Positions 47,321 to 63,812 of a DNA stretch of 64,000 bases are shown here, in pieces. The position numbers were made by a program, and so were the translations under genes. The stretch comes from Callorhinchus milii (taxonomy: Eukaryota). The notes beneath the pieces are model-generated. The model was not told the origin of the DNA. It did no database searches and saw only the letters and a list, made by a program, of their open reading frames with translations. The stretch lies in the NCBI RefSeq assembly GCF_018977255.1, contig NW_024704842.1:62001-126000 (forward strand). The letters are read 5' to 3'. The number at the start of each line of letters is the position of its first letter. The stretch's first letter is position 1.

Positions 47321-47425
47321 CTACACTCTGACTGTGGCGTAGATTGGACCATCATTCTCACCGTTTTCACGGCCATTCTCAATCCTGTTTCCCAACATCA
47401 GATTAGCGTAGATGATGTCAGCATT
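47321..47425 (-). CDS. Receptor copy B, terminal coding exon with IIYANL and PIYATV motifs
   Basis: CTCTGATTGCAG acceptor; NADIIYANLMLGNRIENGRENGENDGPIYATVRV then TAG at 47323-47321. Confidence 0.82.
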   Translation of the reverse strand, partial: NADIIYANLMLGNRIENGRENGENDGPIYATVRV

Positions 47426-61200: not shown

Positions 61201-63812
61201 CATACTGGACTGTTATACTTTATATTATACTATTCTAGTTGATATTAGAATACTATACTCTATGTTAGATTCTTAAACTTTGTATTTATATTTACGGTCA
61301 GGACACAATTTTACACAAGTTTCCTCTATCCACATGTTTCTGTTTATCTAGCAGTCAGTGGTAACCCAGCAGTCAATTGGCGTTTCTTTTCTTGGGATAA
61401 CAATCCCTTAAAAAAAATGTAATTTGGTCACTCAATCCATGAATCTTTGTGAGACACCACTGTGTGCGATTGGCTGCCGTATATCTTCAGCAAAGCAAGC
61501 AGCTGTTTCATATGGCAGTATATTCTGTGAAGCCTTTTGGGACCCGATAAGGCTCTTAAACAAATCCAAGGATTATTATTATTATTATCATAGTTTATAT
61601 TAGATCACTACAATTCGTACTTCATTATTAAACGTTGTATTATATATTTTATTCTTCTACTTTATATACGATAGGAGATTACACCCAAAATATGGCCATG
61701 GTTTACTGCTTTGTTACAGTGTACATTAGTGTAGATCCCTCAGAGCAGACTCGCTCCCTCTGTACTGAACACCATACTTCAGAATGAAGTTTGGTCGATT
61801 TGGAAGGTATTCAAAAGCTAACTGAACATGGAGAAGGAATGGGCAAGGCACAGGGATTGAGGAGCAGTAATAATATTCCCACAGCAACATTTGATTGTTA
61901 GATTGTGTCACTAACCTGCAGATTCCACAGACTTTCTCTCCAGTAGTATTACTGTACACGGGAAAGAAAGATCAAGGCAGGAATTATTAATAAAATAATT
62001 CACCGAAAAATCTGCCGTCACATAATCGTTCCTTGACTACAGGCAGCCACTCAAGTTCGCCGTCAAAAAGATCATGAGTAGGTTAGCGAACACCAGCGCA
62101 AATACAATCGGGAAAAAGCGGACAGGGATTGGGATTATTGTAGAGCGCTCCAGTGGGGGAGCGAACACCATCACAGACACCATGGGGAGAGCGCACAATA
62201 GGACTGAACAAAGATAACTTTCACAGACTGACAAGCACACGGTTGGGCTGAACGGCATTTTCTGCGAAAGAAAAAAACAGAAATTACTGGAGATGCTGGA
62301 TATCAGACAACAAAAACAAAAGTCGTTGGGCACATTCAGCAGTTGAGGCAGCAGATCTAACGAGCGGTCGTGGAAACGAAACGTTGACTCTCTTTCCTTT
62401 CTCCTTAGATGTTGCCTGACATGCTGAGTGTTCCCAGAGACTTCTGATAATTATTTTCTGAGCAAGGGCCGTTTGTGTTTCTGTTTCTCTTTCGAGGCTT
62501 GGGGAAGAAGCGATTTGCTGACCACTCGCAACCTGAGAAATTTATGTTTAACAGACTGAGCAGATTGTGTCTCTCTTTCTGTATGAAGTGTGCTTACTGG
62601 CTGTTATTTTTCCTGGTAGCTTCTGTCTCGTTACCCAAAAATAACAACCTGCATTTTGACGACTTGCATTTATACTGCAATAAATCTACTTTAATGAGGG
62701 TAAGCATAGAAATGACTTTCTCTCCTCACTGTCCCCTTTCTCCTTTCTCTGCTTTTGCACTCGACCTTCCCGCCTCTCCAAAACCAACAAAAAATTAAGG
62801 ATCACTAAGGTGATCGAACGCACGGTCAAAGGGAAGAGTGTTCAGATTTATCTTGAAGGAAGCAAGGAAAGGGTGAGGTAGGTGGACTGCAGAATGTAGT
62901 CCTAATGGGTGGGTAGAGATTGGCTAAATGATCGCCCGTAAATGGTGGGGCTGTGAGGTGGGAGACATGAATCAGGCTGGAGTCCGCTGAGCTGAGGGAG
63001 CGGGTAGATTGGTAAGGCGTAGGAGGTCGCAGATGTAGGGGTGTGTGAGGACATGGAGGGCTTTCAATGTGAGTAACATTATCTTGAACTGTATCCAAGG
63101 ATGGGGATGATATGGTCACAGAGACTGGTGGAGGAGATGACACTAGCTGCAGGTTTCTGGGTGATCTGCAGTCGATAGAGGGAGTATTTAGGCAGACGGA
63201 CAAGCAGTGGGTTTGCGCACAGAATCCTGGATCTCATAAAAGAATGTTATAAAAGCATGTATAAGTGTTCCGGCAGCCTGCGGTGTGAGACATTGGTGGA
63301 CACCGTTAATGTTGCGGGAATGGGGGAAGATAGAGCGGGTTATGACACGAGTTTGGGATACATAGGATAGTTGAGGATCAAAAAAGACGCCTTTCACTCC
63401 TCCCTCTTTTCCAACTCTCTGGATGGCACAACTCTCCGAATGGGTTGTAATCATAAATAATAATTCTTGCATTTGATATAGCGCTTTTCATGTCTTCGAG
63501 ACATGTCTAATTAGAATTCACCGTATATTTGTGGGCGAAGTGCGGTTGGCAATTGCACATAGCAGTGTCCTACAAACTGTCGGTGATTGAAAATGAGCAA
63601 TACAGCATTGTTTTGTTTAGGAGCGGTTATTATGAGGAGTATAGAGTAGAAATTGCCCAAGGGTTCGCCCTGCCTGGAAAAGGAAAAAAGTGTCTCGCTT
63701 GCAAGGCGATTGCTCTAACCACAGAGCTACAGAACCCCACTTTACGGTACATTCCCACAAATATTCGTGGATTGAAACGGTACTCACCGAAAATAAGAAA
63801 CAATGATTCCAT
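47321..63812 (-). CDS. 13-exon type I membrane receptor gene, SRCR x3 - Ig(C2) x3 - TM - ITIM tail (copy B), 706 aa. Exons: 63812-63788, 61951-61916, 60875-60552, 57539-57228, 56222-55971, 55426-55142, 54299-54015, 52992-52708, 51832-51734, 50699-50672, 49925-49882, 48587-48547, 47425-47321
   Basis: All introns are GT-AG and phases join (1-1-1-1-1-1-1-1-1-2-1-0). The exons total 2121 nt = 707 codons with no internal stop. The product reads MESLFLIFVILLERKSVESA / SRCR x3 / Ig x3 / ANWTWKQITGLAAGIVAALMIIVLLLGISEYKKG / ...EPSNVTYATVRKVPRSVPSMNADIIYANL...GPIYATVRV*. Confidence 0.85.
48547..48587 (-). CDS. Receptor copy B, cytoplasmic exon (41 nt, (Y)ATVRKVPRSVPSM)
   Basis: TTCCGTTTGTTTCAG acceptor, GTGAGT donor; phase 1 to 0. 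Confidence 0.75.
49882..49925 (-). CDS. Receptor copy B, cytoplasmic exon (44 nt, NVPTGGGPEPSNVT)
   Basis: TGTTTTTTTTCGCAG acceptor, GTGAGT donor; phase 2 to 1; supplies the first base of the ITIM1 Tyr codon. Confidence 0.75.
50672..50699 (-). CDS. Receptor copy B, cytoplasmic micro-exon (28 nt, GKQKSSSGER)
   Basis: CCCTTTGCAATTACAG acceptor, GTGAGA donor; phase 1 to 2 fits both neighbouring exons. Confidence 0.7.
51734..51832 (-). CDS. Receptor copy B, transmembrane exon (99 nt)
   Basis: CATTTCCCTCTCTAG acceptor; NWTWKQITGLAAGIVAALMIIVLLLGISEYKK with an uncharged 22-aa hydrophobic stretch; donor GTAAGT. Not in the ORF track. Confidence 0.88.
52708..52992 (-). CDS. Receptor copy B, C2-type Ig domain 3 exon (285 nt)
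   Basis: DPHQKAKISLEPDSRVFVRGESAEISCSGNYPGSNFSLYRD...ANYTCKYTT...ASERVGITVR; GT-AG flanks, phase 1-1. Confidence 0.92.
54015..54299 (-). CDS. Receptor copy B, C2-type Ig domain 2 exon (285 nt)
   Basis: EPLQKPTISLKPDSRVFVRGESAEISCSGNYPGSNFSLYREG...GNYSCKY...SPESERVGISLW; GT-AG flanks, phase 1-1. Confidence 0.92.
55142..55426 (-). CDS. Receptor copy B, C2-type Ig domain 1 exon (285 nt)
   Basis: DPLQKAIISLKPDSPFFVRGESAQISCSGNYPGSIFSLY...GIYTCKYTT...SPESERVGIYLW; TTTAATTTCAG acceptor, GTAAGA donor. Confidence 0.92.
55665..55785. repeat. 17-bp tandem repeat TCAGTGTGAGCTCGGGG, about 6-7 units, in the SRCR3-Ig1 intron
   Basis: Direct inspection. Confidence 0.85.
55971..56222 (-). CDS. Receptor copy B, shortened SRCR domain 3 exon (252 nt)
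   Basis: [28 protein letters not shown]...ICKYLGCG...FGEGSGPVVGRPDCGHGQDGGIFCS; CTTGGCAG acceptor, GTATAG donor, phase 1-1. Confidence 0.88.
57228..57539 (-). CDS. Receptor copy B, SRCR domain 2 exon (312 nt)
   Basis: [47 protein letters not shown]...DAGVICS; TTTTGGCAG acceptor, GTAAAT donor. Confidence 0.95.
60552..60875 (-). CDS. Receptor copy B, SRCR domain 1 exon (324 nt)
   Basis: [38 protein letters not shown]...VRCKGSE..LRYC...DAGVICS; TTTTACAG acceptor, GTAATT donor, phase 1-1. Confidence 0.95.
61916..61951 (-). CDS. Receptor copy B, 36-nt leader mini-exon 2 ((V)ILLERKSVESA)
   Basis: Polypyrimidine acceptor TCTTTCTTTCCCGTGTACAG, donor GTTAGT, phase 1-1; conserved at 3089-3124. Confidence 0.75.
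63788..63812 (-). CDS. Receptor copy B, leader exon 1 (MESLFLIF)
   Basis: ATGGAATCATTGTTTCTTATTTTCG|GTGAGT, phase 1; conserved in the paralog at 4899-4923. Confidence 0.75.

Follow-up and report, generated by a model that had tools for sequence, protein, structure and literature searches.

CD5 and CD6 are lymphocyte receptors with three group-B SRCR domains, whose tails bear tyrosines and modulate signalling from the antigen receptor. CD163 is an endocytic receptor, and WC1 and SCART are markers of gamma-delta T cells. A 36-bp second leader exon is typical of LRC genes, a rule that we found stated in no paper of the open literature, and ITIM-bearing receptors can be bifunctional. PMC8356672 describes WC1 as a co-receptor that becomes phosphorylated on tyrosine and enhances TCR responses, and some domains of the CD163 family are known as a 6-Cys SRCR variant without C2 and C7 (PMC2906472). 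The hallmark of the activating transmembrane segment (TM) in LRC receptors is NxxR, and a DYT motif on the N-terminal side of the TM has also been described for them (PMC6557307). FcR and FCRL genes have a second leader exon of 21 bp (PMC7940838, PMC2413239). For inhibitory signalling, alanine at pY+1 in the ITIM of PD-1 promoted SHP-1 recruitment, and the binding sites for the SH2 domains of SHP-1/2 are conserved across jawed vertebrates (PMC12151841).

One named mammalian Ig/SRCR chimera exists: FCRLS, restricted to eutherians, which has its Ig domains first, a single C-terminal SRCR domain, a 21-bp second leader exon and no TM or tail, the protein being secreted (PMC7940838). The initial annotation of the locus reported here recognised no named gene that joins SRCR arrays to C2-Ig domains and ITIMs in this architecture; FCRLS does mix SRCR and Ig domains, but its order is reversed and its product is secreted.

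An intact 13-exon gene at 47321-63812

The window, the whole 64-kb stretch of Callorhinchus milii DNA that was analysed, holds on its minus strand (47321-63812) an intact 13-exon gene for a predicted 706-aa type I membrane receptor of this holocephalan, the elephant shark. Its exons are as follows.

63812-63788, minus, 25 nt: exon 1 (L1), ATG and first half of the signal peptide (MESLFLIF); phase 0->1, donor GTGAGT
61951-61916, minus, 36 nt: exon 2 (L2), second leader exon VILLERKSVESA; phase 1-1, acceptor ...gtgtacAG, donor GTTAGT
60875-60552, minus, 324 nt: exon 3, SRCR1, group-B, 6-Cys (Pfam SRCR, PDB match, Cys pattern)
57539-57228, minus, 312 nt: exon 4, SRCR2, 6-Cys type like SRCR1 (Pfam SRCR, Cys pattern)
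56222-55971, minus, 252 nt: exon 5, SRCR3, short 84-aa SRCR, ...GEGSGPVVGRPDCGHGQDGGIFCS (third Pfam SRCR stretch)
55426-55142, minus, 285 nt: exon 6, Ig1; phase 1-1 (Pfam, PDB matches, AF2, Foldseek)
54299-54015, minus, 285 nt: exon 7, Ig2 (evidence as for Ig1)
52992-52708, minus, 285 nt: exon 8, Ig3 (evidence as for Ig1)
51832-51734, minus, 99 nt: exon 9, stalk and uncharged transmembrane helix ITGLAAGIVAALMIIVLLLGI (sequence, AF2 helix)
50699-50672, minus, 28 nt: exon 10, cyt1, KQKSSSGE (agrees with RefSeq tails)
49925-49882, minus, 44 nt: exon 11, cyt2, RNVPTGGGPEPSNVT and first base of Tyr659 (splice sites)
48587-48547, minus, 41 nt: exon 12, cyt3, completes ITIM 1 (VTY/ATV), then RKVPRSVPSM (splice sites)
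47425-47321, minus, 105 nt including stop: exon 13, cyt4, IIYANL (Y678), ITIM-like PIYATV (Y701) and stop codon (kept in paralogues)

An independent rebuild reproduced base for base the 13-exon, 706-aa open reading frame with GT-AG sites and matching phases that had been proposed, the joined exons giving a CDS of 2121 nt (706 aa) with zero internal stops. In all exons the acceptor AG lies behind a pyrimidine tract, all donors are GT (mainly GTAAG/GTGAG), phases match across the whole gene, and the one N, at 56539, falls within an intron. The proposed domain order, with its uncharged TM and two ITIMs, agrees with the splice model, Pfam and a motif check: a split leader, two 6-Cys group-B SRCR domains, one short SRCR domain, three LRC-type C2 Ig domains, the TM and the ITIM tail. 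The leader of exon 1 is also present in the RefSeq paralogue models P0125, P0126 and P0050, and exon 2 is homologous to 'IFLERKPVETA' of paralogue LOC103191288.

RefSeq places two separate computed genes at this locus instead of one. The first, of 118 aa, contains L1 and SRCR1 and runs on into the intron; the second, LOC103172721, has models that begin at an internal Met in the SRCR2 exon. As a result of this split, the SRCR1-to-SRCR2 junction is without model support at this copy; the equivalent junction is used in RefSeq models of paralogues. From mid-SRCR2 to cyt2, the exons of the window agree with XP_042201734.1 at 100% identity. Isoform X2 shows the same identity from mid-SRCR2 through cyt2 and ends in ...NVTCE, a read-through of the cyt2 donor, while isoform X3 lacks the Ig2 exon (exon 7 skipped). 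In three of the four isoforms, the TM and the tail each differ by one residue from those of the window (KHITG, SVPPM), and the exons encoding them are absent from the window. Full-length paralogue models, which hold every remaining exon type, do exist under labels such as "DMBT1-like" and "uncharacterized". The description of the gene as hidden is only partly accurate: computed models cover parts of the locus and full-length ones its paralogues. We found no paper in the literature describing an SRCR-Ig ITIM receptor family of C. milii. The Pfam SRCR match to the 706-aa protein (E = 2.6e-64) together with its Ig matches, the identity to XP_042201734.1 and the occurrence of all remaining exon types in paralogue models exclude a chance origin of the gene model.

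It is nevertheless conceivable that this copy is a recent duplicate that does not express the 706-aa protein, being silent or giving truncated or alternative products, with the open reading frame as a well-preserved relic. The unjoined SRCR1 and SRCR2 in RefSeq would fit such a history, as would the several copies with flanking duplicates 95% identical, a stop codon in a neighbouring family exon on another scaffold, and the lack of an AATAAA or ATTAAA polyA signal within 1.3 kb 3' of the stop codon. Compared with a paralogue, the dN/dS (from small counts) is about 1.2 in the Ig exons, 0.14 in the TM and 0.53 in the last exon; the value for the Ig exons, being close to 1, could just as well reflect relaxed constraint. 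Against a relic stand the reading frame, which is uninterrupted in all 13 exons, their canonical splice sites and agreeing phases, the 100% identity of isoform X2 mentioned above, and the excess of synonymous over non-synonymous changes per site in the TM and tail. We consider such a relic quite unlikely.

Origin of the SRCR and Ig modules

Pfam matched SRCR in three stretches, in keeping with the three SRCR domains claimed, but SRCR1 and SRCR2 each lack two of the 8 cysteines, Cys2 and Cys7, and so keep 6 (pattern CxCCCCxC), and SRCR3 is the short 84-aa variant. All three domains contain C1 and C4 and each occupies one exon; single-exon domains and the C1-C4 pair are the features by which the group-B SRCR superfamily is recognised. 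In PDB searches, the closest solved relative of the SRCR part is CD163, and CD6 is among the matches. The short form recurs in Scyliorhinus P0115, Pristis P0054 and C. milii P0110, and elasmobranch SRCR-only proteins have both it and the CxCCCCxC pattern. In a tree, the C. milii SRCR domains form one group (support 0.85), which is joined next by elasmobranch SRCR-only proteins (support 0.997). For the SRCR part, the AF2 model cannot be relied on (pLDDT about 30, the short SRCR being of low confidence).

For the Ig part, Pfam matched Ig_2, Ig_3 and Ig_C19orf38, and the AF2 model has a pLDDT of mostly 75-94 over Ig1-Ig3. A phmmer search against the PDB gave PirB (2e-14) and FCRL5 (4.7e-14), then LILRB2, KIR3DL1, LILRB1, NKp46, OSCAR and GPVI; FCRL5, scoring nearly as well as PirB, is the sole strong match outside the LRC. 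Foldseek ordered PirB/LILRB3 at the top, KIR3DL1 next and FcgRI after. By sequence and by modelled fold, the Ig domains are nearer to LRC receptors than to the rest of the IgSF, which bears out the LRC-type C2 assignment made initially.

We infer, with good support, that the gene is an exon-shuffled fusion of a chondrichthyan CD163/WC1-like front and a LILR-like Ig/ITIM back. The CD163/WC1-like 5' module would have given the two leader exons, two 6-Cys SRCR exons and one short SRCR exon, and a LILR-like gene the Ig-TM-ITIM module, the exons spanning the junction (2-9) being phase 1-1 throughout; tandem duplication would then have amplified the SRCR-Ig fusion. Both parent types persist in the C. 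milii genome, as P0110 (SRCR-only) and P0301 (Ig-only with an ITIM tail), and the TM and tail resemble those of Ig-only ITIM receptors (P0301, P0186) and not those of SRCR-only genes (P0110, P0045). A catshark locus has the SRCR module as in C. milii, followed by SRCR exons only. At 36 nt, L2 departs from the 21-bp FcR/FCRL rule and has the length named above for the LRC, but the leader could instead stem from the SRCR parent gene.

Cytoplasmic tail and proposed signalling

The TM is predicted at residues 609-629, its core is free of charged residues, and AF2 models it as a helix (residues 445-474 of P0005). The tail, initially given as 64 aa, is longer: the four cytoplasmic exons encode 72 aa of it, and counted from the end of the predicted TM it has 77 aa. 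It contains VTY659ATV, split over cyt2 and cyt3, followed in cyt4 by IIY678ANL and PIY701ATV, at spacings of 19 and 23 residues. VTYATV and IIYANL match the ITIM consensus (S/I/V/L)xYxx(I/V/L), and at least two matches are unexpected in a shuffle test (P = 0.008). As PIYATV carries Pro at -2, only two motifs fit the consensus; the claimed pair of ITIMs is confirmed, and the terminal motif is present but only ITIM-like. The ITIMs are kept in the 58%-identical paralogue LOC103191288 and in the Ig-only member P0301, and Ig-only receptors of other cartilaginous fish carry comparable C-terminal motifs: IVYADL and AVYADV in Mobula, ITYAVL and LYAEV in Carcharodon. All three tail motifs have Ala at pY+1.

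One family member, paralogue P0138/P0219, has a TM reading ...GIVNVARLIVV... (NxxR) followed by a 21-aa tail; the activating type of TM is thus a feature of the family and not of the window gene. A DYT motif N-terminal of the TM is not evident in P0138/P0219, and the 64-kb window contains no NxxR-TM exon. Together, the Ig-only ITIM members and the short-tailed NxxR-TM member suggest that the family holds paired inhibitory and activating receptors.

These motifs, read in the light of established ITIM biology, allow a mechanism to be proposed. The SRCR and/or Ig ectodomain would bind a putative microbial or self ligand, Src-family kinases would phosphorylate Y659, Y678 and possibly Y701, and the tandem SH2 domains of SHP-1/SHP-2 would dock on the phosphorylated tyrosines. 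The phosphatases may then dephosphorylate proximal substrates of the ITAM pathway and raise the activation threshold of the receptor-bearing leukocyte, and the members with an NxxR-arginine TM and short tail would act as activating partners. Inhibitory signalling through SHP-1/2, and any role in pattern recognition, are predicted here from motifs.

Every ITIM of the tail also fits the YxxPhi endocytic signal, and the protein could instead be an endocytic/scavenging or WC1-like co-stimulatory receptor, with the YATV/YANL tyrosines recognised by AP-2 for sorting or, once phosphorylated, acting as docking sites for activation. Its SRCR module from a CD163/WC1-like lineage would suit such a role, and elasmobranch SRCR-Ig proteins with other tail motifs exist (e.g., NPVY in Chiloscyllium). 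However, the whole TM and tail appear to come from the Ig-only LILR-like parent and not from the SRCR parent; inhibitory receptors of the LRC typically show such a V/I-x-Y-A-x-V/L context, such spacing (here 19 and 23 residues) and a tail encoded by several exons; and an arginine-TM, short-tail form within a family is the usual signature of inhibitory/activating pairs. We regard the endocytic or co-stimulatory role as possible though unlikely. The best explanation overall, to which we assign a probability of roughly 60%, is an SRCR-Ig ITIM receptor gene of exon-shuffled origin with an inhibitory mechanism.

Genomic neighbourhood and comparison with known systems

Further features of the window are a second family copy and three TCR V segments.

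1..5104, minus: 5' part of the second family copy (L1' 4923-4899, L2' 3124-3089, SRCR1' 2049-1726), a duplicate of 58827-64000
31367..31718, minus: V segment 1 (V exon 31718-31406), RSS CACAGTG - 23 bp - ACAAAAACT
40411..40899, plus: V segment 2 (leader 40411-40468, V exon 40579-40860), RSS CACAGTG - 23 bp - ACACAAACC
41813..42164, plus: V segment 3 (V exon 41813-42125), RSS CACAGTG - 23 bp - ACAGAAACT

The second copy, which corresponds to RefSeq XP_042201737.1, aligns to 58827-64000 by blastn in one block of 4.2 kb (95% identity) and another of 0.96 kb (89%). All three V segments have a V exon ending in YxC, then a canonical heptamer, 23-bp spacer and nonamer, and so substantiate the TCR V neighbourhood noted initially. 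The best PDB matches are TCR alpha chains for V segment 2, and TCR alpha and Vdelta1 for V segment 3. The segments lie 5-16 kb downstream of the SRCR-Ig gene, with family exons on both sides of them. As for the LRC framework genes (RPS9, TSEN34, LENG and CNOT3; human 19q13.4), the window and the loci retrieved from its own and from another scaffold show paralogues, TCR V segments and LINE remnants only.

As scaffold MU249905.1, with which the window overlaps at 100%, is unplaced (168 kb) and repeat-rich, contains large near-identical duplicates and has N gaps within the window (25.6-29 kb, 35302-35326, 36956-37090), the proximity of receptor genes to V segments might be an assembly artefact. 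We judge this very improbable, given that the V segments at 40.4-42.2 kb share one gap-free stretch with the last exon at 47.3 kb and are bordered by family exons on both sides. A more speculative reading, of which we are doubtful, takes the SRCR-Ig ITIM genes and the TCR alpha/delta-type V segments to be co-duplicated as a functional cassette, a holocephalan T-cell co-receptor/pattern-recognition system. Within it, and with the same reserve, the SRCR head would be WC1-like and the signalling LILR-like, with inhibitory (ITIM) and activating (NxxR-TM) pairs. If that were true, LRC-type paired receptors and the WC1-type link to the TCR would date back to the base of jawed vertebrates.

The SRCR-Ig ITIM gene resembles LRC inhibitory receptors (LILRB/PirB, KIR-L, chicken CHIR-B) in its C2 Ig matches, the encoding of each Ig domain by a single phase 1-1 exon of 285 nt, split leader, uncharged TM and multi-exon tail with V/IxYAxV/L ITIMs. 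Like LRC receptors, it belongs to a tandemly duplicated multigene family with an NxxR-arginine-TM counterpart (PMC6557307). It differs in having three SRCR domains ahead of the Ig domains, TCR V neighbours and a holocephalan host. With CD163/WC1/SCART it has in common group-B SRCR domains on single phase 1-1 exons, membership of a multigene family and, in CD163, its closest solved relative; WC1 and SCART are linked to gamma-delta T cells, and the C. milii gene adjoins TCR alpha/delta-like V segments. Only the N-terminal SRCR module is common to both, the remainder being Ig with a LILR-like ITIM TM and tail; the three Ig domains and the Ig-only-type TM/tail rule out membership of the CD163/WC1/SCART family proper, whose ectodomain is SRCR-only. 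Identity with FCRLS is ruled out by the SRCR-first order, the TM with ITIM tail and the 36-nt second leader exon. CD5 and CD6 are alike in three group-B SRCR domains and a tyrosine-bearing tail, and differ in having no Ig domains, other tails and another gene family.

SRCR+Ig proteins are also predicted by RefSeq ('uncharacterized', 'DMBT1-like', 'IGSF1-like') in rays, sharks, bowfin and teleosts. Among the ten named, a TM is predicted in those of Narcine, Pristis, Chiloscyllium, Scyliorhinus, Amia, Epinephelus, Engraulis, Cyprinus and Prochilodus, and none in that of Salminus. They likewise join SRCR to the same broad Ig class, but their SRCR domains are almost all 8-Cys and do not group with those of C. 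milii, the proteins are far longer, reaching 3218 aa, several of them intermix SRCR with Ig domains, and no ITIM tail was detected in them. They are probably independent shuffling events. The family was initially assigned to cartilaginous fish; SRCR+Ig membrane proteins as such extend to bowfin and teleosts, although their SRCR types differ and they lack the ITIM tail. Overall, in an arrangement for which no literature description was found, the SRCR-Ig ITIM gene joins kinds of module that are already known, and its family is duplicated and computer-annotated.

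Structure and annotation of the hybrid gene

On the minus strand between 64000 and 47200 there are long open stretches that code for SRCR and Ig sequence. With exon limits set from splice sites, these resolve into 13 exons, each with a polypyrimidine-AG acceptor and a GT donor, giving a coding sequence of 2121 nt and a protein of 706 aa that starts at an ATG at 63812 and ends with a TAG at 47321. The rebuilt model reproduces exactly the exon number, coordinates and protein length of the initial annotation. Exons 2-9, encoding the second leader, three SRCR domains, three Ig domains and the transmembrane (TM) segment, are phase 1-1 throughout, and are followed by cytoplasmic mini-exons (cyt1-4) of 28, 44, 41 and 105 nt in phases 1-2, 2-1, 1-0 and 0-0. 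The motif VTYATV straddles the cyt2/cyt3 boundary and was therefore missed by a direct six-frame search. The tail, previously put at 64 aa, is 72 aa long from the cytoplasmic exons, or 77 aa when counted after the predicted TM. No polyA signal, neither AATAAA nor ATTAAA, occurs within 1.3 kb 3' of the stop codon (46000-47320, minus strand).

The best database matches of the protein are Callorhinchus milii RefSeq proteins, and a piece of scaffold MU249905.1 (GCA_018977255.1, 168 kb) is 100% identical to window positions 61838-64000. RefSeq divides the single 13-exon locus at 47321-63812 into two genes, XP_042201738.1 and LOC103172721, and models the same architecture in full for paralogues under uninformative names.

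RefSeq models of the locus and of its full-architecture paralogues
XP_042201738.1, 118 aa: L1 joined directly to SRCR1, then reading into the intron
LOC103172721, isoforms X1-X4: start at an internal Met in SRCR2
XP_042201732.1, 616 aa, "DMBT1-like": full-architecture paralogue, its gene ending 7.8 kb upstream of the window
LOC103191288 X1-X5, 654-729 aa: full-architecture paralogue, older annotation release

Isoform X2 ("M130-like", 499 aa) is 100% identical to the rebuilt model until it reads through the cyt2 donor. Isoforms X1, X3 and X4 have the full ITIM tail, with TM and cyt3 each one residue off the window sequence (KHITG, SVPPM). As these TM and cyt3 sequences are absent from the window, the exons come from another copy; they were probably borrowed from one more than 50 kb away, which would make these models chimeric. 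No RefSeq product equals the 706-aa protein, and the 13-exon model corrects the split annotation at this locus. Literature searches by LOC/XP identifiers and by SRCR/Ig/ITIM architecture found no describing paper. The novelty of the gene is lowered by the pre-existing computed models and raised by the family context described below.

Ectodomains and cytoplasmic tail

Pfam detects three SRCR stretches in the 706-aa protein (E = 2.6e-64) together with Ig_2, Ig_3 and Ig_C19orf38. The three SRCR domains reported initially are thus present, but SRCR3 is a short 84-aa form, and SRCR1 and SRCR2 have six cysteines. Both of the latter keep C1-C4, the group-B pair, and lack C2 and C7, a variant known for some CD163-family domains (Herzig et al., PMC2906472). 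The closest solved structures for the SRCR part are CD163, PIT54, CD5L, CD6 and DMBT1. An AF2 model, built on RefSeq isoform X2 with a nine-sequence family alignment, was not usable for the SRCR part (pLDDT about 30), the short SRCR3 included. All three Ig domains were modelled with confidence (pLDDT mostly 75-94) and the TM as a helix; the leading Foldseek matches were PirB/LILRB3, KIR3DL1, FcgRI, LILRB4, NKp46 and OSCAR. By sequence, the closest solved structures for the Ig part are PirB (2e-14), FCRL5 (4.7e-14), LILRB2, KIR3DL1, LILRB1, NKp46, OSCAR, LILRA2 and GPVI, with FCRL5 scoring nearly as high as PirB.

The hybrid TM is uncharged, and the tail carries two consensus ITIMs 19 residues apart, VTYATV (Y659) and IIYANL (Y678), as first described. 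The terminal PIYATV (Y701), 23 residues further on, is only ITIM-like, having Pro at -2. All three motifs have Ala at pY+1 and are conserved in paralogues whose overall identity is only about 58-62%. Once Src-family kinases have phosphorylated an ITIM, it recruits SHP-1 and SHP-2, phosphatases with tandem SH2 domains. Jawed vertebrates conserve the SH2 binding sites of both enzymes, and in the PD-1 ITIM an alanine at pY+1 promoted recruitment of SHP-1 (PMC12151841). From these features we infer that the protein is an inhibitory receptor, one that would act in the manner of LILRB, PirB, KIR-L or CHIR-B with a CD163/WC1-type SRCR head. The original interpretation of a hybrid SRCR-Ig inhibitory receptor is supported.

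One C. milii paralogue encoded outside the window, P0138 (current RefSeq model) / P0219 (XP_007909116.1), has one 6-Cys SRCR, one short SRCR and one Ig domain. Its TM ("...GIVNVARLIVVITL...", GIVNVARLIVV) precedes a 21-aa tail and includes "NVAR", in agreement with NxxR. Guselnikov and Taranin regard this motif as the best-conserved feature of activating LRC receptors that associate with FcR-gamma (PMC6557307). This suggests that the family comprises paired inhibitory and activating receptors, with P0138/P0219 a candidate FcR-gamma-type activating receptor in a cartilaginous fish. Judged by sequence, the Ig similarity and the NxxR TM of the family support placing the hybrid receptor in the LRC lineage, with the near-equal score of FCRL5 as a caveat. 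A further relative, P0188, has an Arg inside an ITIM-type TM.

In comparison with one paralogue, the Ig exons have a dN/dS of about 1.2 (38.5 non-synonymous versus 9.5 synonymous differences), and the TM and last exons have values of 0.14 and 0.53, based on small counts. This pattern is as expected for diversifying ectodomains and conserved signalling parts, although relaxed constraint is a possible explanation of the value in the Ig exons.

Genomic setting and probable origin by fusion

Three TCR alpha/delta-like V segments lie downstream of the hybrid gene in mixed orientation, as the initial annotation had placed it in a TCR V neighbourhood. All three V exons end in Y-Y/L-C, followed by an intact RSS of CACAGTG, a 23-bp spacer and an A-rich nonamer, and among solved structures they come closest to TCR alpha and Vdelta1 chains.

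V segments and repeats in the window
41813-42125 (41813-42164 including the RSS), plus strand: V3 exon; CACAGTG, 23-bp spacer, nonamer
40411-40899, plus strand: V2, with a recognisable leader exon (40411-40468) and V exon (40579-40860)
31718-31406 (31367-31718 including the RSS), minus strand: V1 exon; CACAGTG, 23-bp spacer, nonamer
22808-23635 (plus), 45650-46354 (plus), also 23978-24450: remnants of LINE-type reverse transcriptase and C-terminal ORF
25095-29161 and 36915-38151: long simple repeats, CT-rich (SLSLS-coding) and TG/CA-rich (CVCV-coding), broken by N-masked gaps

At V1, an ATG-containing stretch just upstream of the V exon meets a stop codon, and no leader was identified there. 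A related LINE 3' fragment lies directly downstream of the last exon of the hybrid gene (24186-24602 versus 46001-46432, 89% identity), and the simple repeats give spurious ORFs of more than 1000 aa.

Window positions 1-5104 directly duplicate 58827-64000 (95% identity over 4.2 kb, 89% over 0.96 kb) and hold the L1', L2' and SRCR1' exons of a further copy, XP_042201737.1, with part of intron 3. No further family exons lie between 6 and 46 kb, and a search of the window for additional exons of the family, or for a TM exon of the NxxR type, found none. The order on the scaffold is paralogue, hybrid gene, V3/V2/V1, paralogue; the offset of about 59 kb between the two copies spans all three V segments. 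The V segments and receptor genes may have been duplicated as one cassette. At a C. milii locus on another scaffold with several family genes (L001, MU249884.1), no V segment was found within 76 kb; linkage to V segments thus characterises the present cluster, not the family at large. Given the SRCR head and the TCR-V neighbourhood, a T-cell function resembling that of WC1 is an attractive but purely speculative idea.

L001 also carries more family exons (L2, SRCR, short SRCR, Ig), inverted, at 292-22573 (minus) beside LOC103173597. A short-SRCR exon there (16259-16008) has an in-frame stop, and the family therefore includes pseudogenic exons. The 878-aa RefSeq model at this locus begins with 450 aa of low-complexity sequence, seemingly an annotation artefact.

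In a FastTree analysis of about 160 SRCR domains, those of the C. milii hybrids form one clade (support 0.85) whose sisters are elasmobranch SRCR-only "DMBT1-like" proteins from Narcine, Scyliorhinus, Heptranchias, Hemiscyllium, Pristiophorus and Pristis (clade support 0.997), and not the SRCR domains of the SRCR-Ig proteins of other fishes. The hybrid and these sister proteins have the CxCCCCxC cysteine pattern in common, and the unusual short SRCR ("...GEGSGHVIGPPGCGHQQDIGVICS") is also found in Scyliorhinus and Pristis. The catshark genome has six 6-Cys exons and a short exon, then only more SRCR exons; the catshark protein P0115 was considered as a mis-annotated hybrid and ruled out, as no Ig, TM or ITIM exons follow. 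At this locus (L003, Scyliorhinus canicula LR744055.1, 5.24-5.30 Mb; 28478-55857), the six 6-Cys exons are near-identical and lie about 3.4-5 kb apart. RefSeq has three separate genes here (902, 251 and 1716 aa), which probably form a single, very long gene of the CD163/WC1-like type.

C. milii still has both parent types. P0110 is an SRCR-only membrane protein that starts with two 6-Cys domains and a short one, followed by mostly 8-Cys SRCR domains, and P0301 and P0186 are Ig-only receptors whose TM and VTYATV / IIYANL / xVYATV tail are the same as in the hybrid. With all exons from L2 through TM in phase 1-1, such modules can join in frame. We conclude that the hybrid gene probably arose when exon shuffling fused a 5' module of CD163/WC1-like type to a 3' module of LILR-like type.

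When 1.84 billion representative proteins were scanned by HMMER, the Ig-only paralogue P0033 as query gave 833 matches, and among the matches listed and new to the search, 31 also carry SRCR domains. Ten named examples, all bearing generic names, come from Narcine, Pristis, Chiloscyllium/Hemiscyllium, Scyliorhinus, Amia, Epinephelus, Salminus, Prochilodus, Engraulis and Cyprinus, and the database matches of the hybrid protein also include cyprinid "DMBT1-like" proteins in which Ig domains are interspersed. Membrane proteins that combine SRCR and Ig domains are thus common among fishes. In species other than C. milii, their SRCR domains are almost all of the 8-Cys type, and no ITIM tail was detected in them. 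The elasmobranch and teleost proteins were ruled out as orthologues, given this cysteine pattern and their position outside the C. milii clade. Ig-only relatives in Mobula and in Carcharodon do have ITIM tails of a similar kind; the Carcharodon protein is annotated "LILRA6". On present data, the SRCR-Ig-ITIM fusion is holocephalan-specific and was later amplified by tandem duplication.

Comparison with known receptor systems

SRCR/Ig fusions apparently arose repeatedly in fishes and have gone undescribed. The hybrid does not belong to the CD163/WC1 family proper, because it has Ig domains and a TM and tail foreign to that family. It is also distinct from FCRLS, which has been described as a unique Ig-like/SRCR-B chimera (PMC7940838), because its domain order is reversed, it is membrane-bound and its second leader exon is 36 nt long, compared with 21 nt in FCRLS. 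A statement of a 36-bp LRC leader rule was not found in the literature searched.

LRC evolution outside mammals has been described as poorly understood. For the NxxR activating TM, published tracing reaches no further than amphibians and birds (PMC6557307), and in cartilaginous fish one survey found neither FcR nor FcRL homologues (PMC4016189). Set beside these accounts, C. milii presents a holocephalan with an expanded LILR-like family in which some members have ITIMs and others, apparently, an NxxR TM. One branch of this family would have taken the N-terminal SRCR module of a CD163/WC1-like gene through phase 1-1 exon shuffling. The hybrid and its paralogues are concrete, testable candidates for early inhibitory and activating leukocyte receptors.
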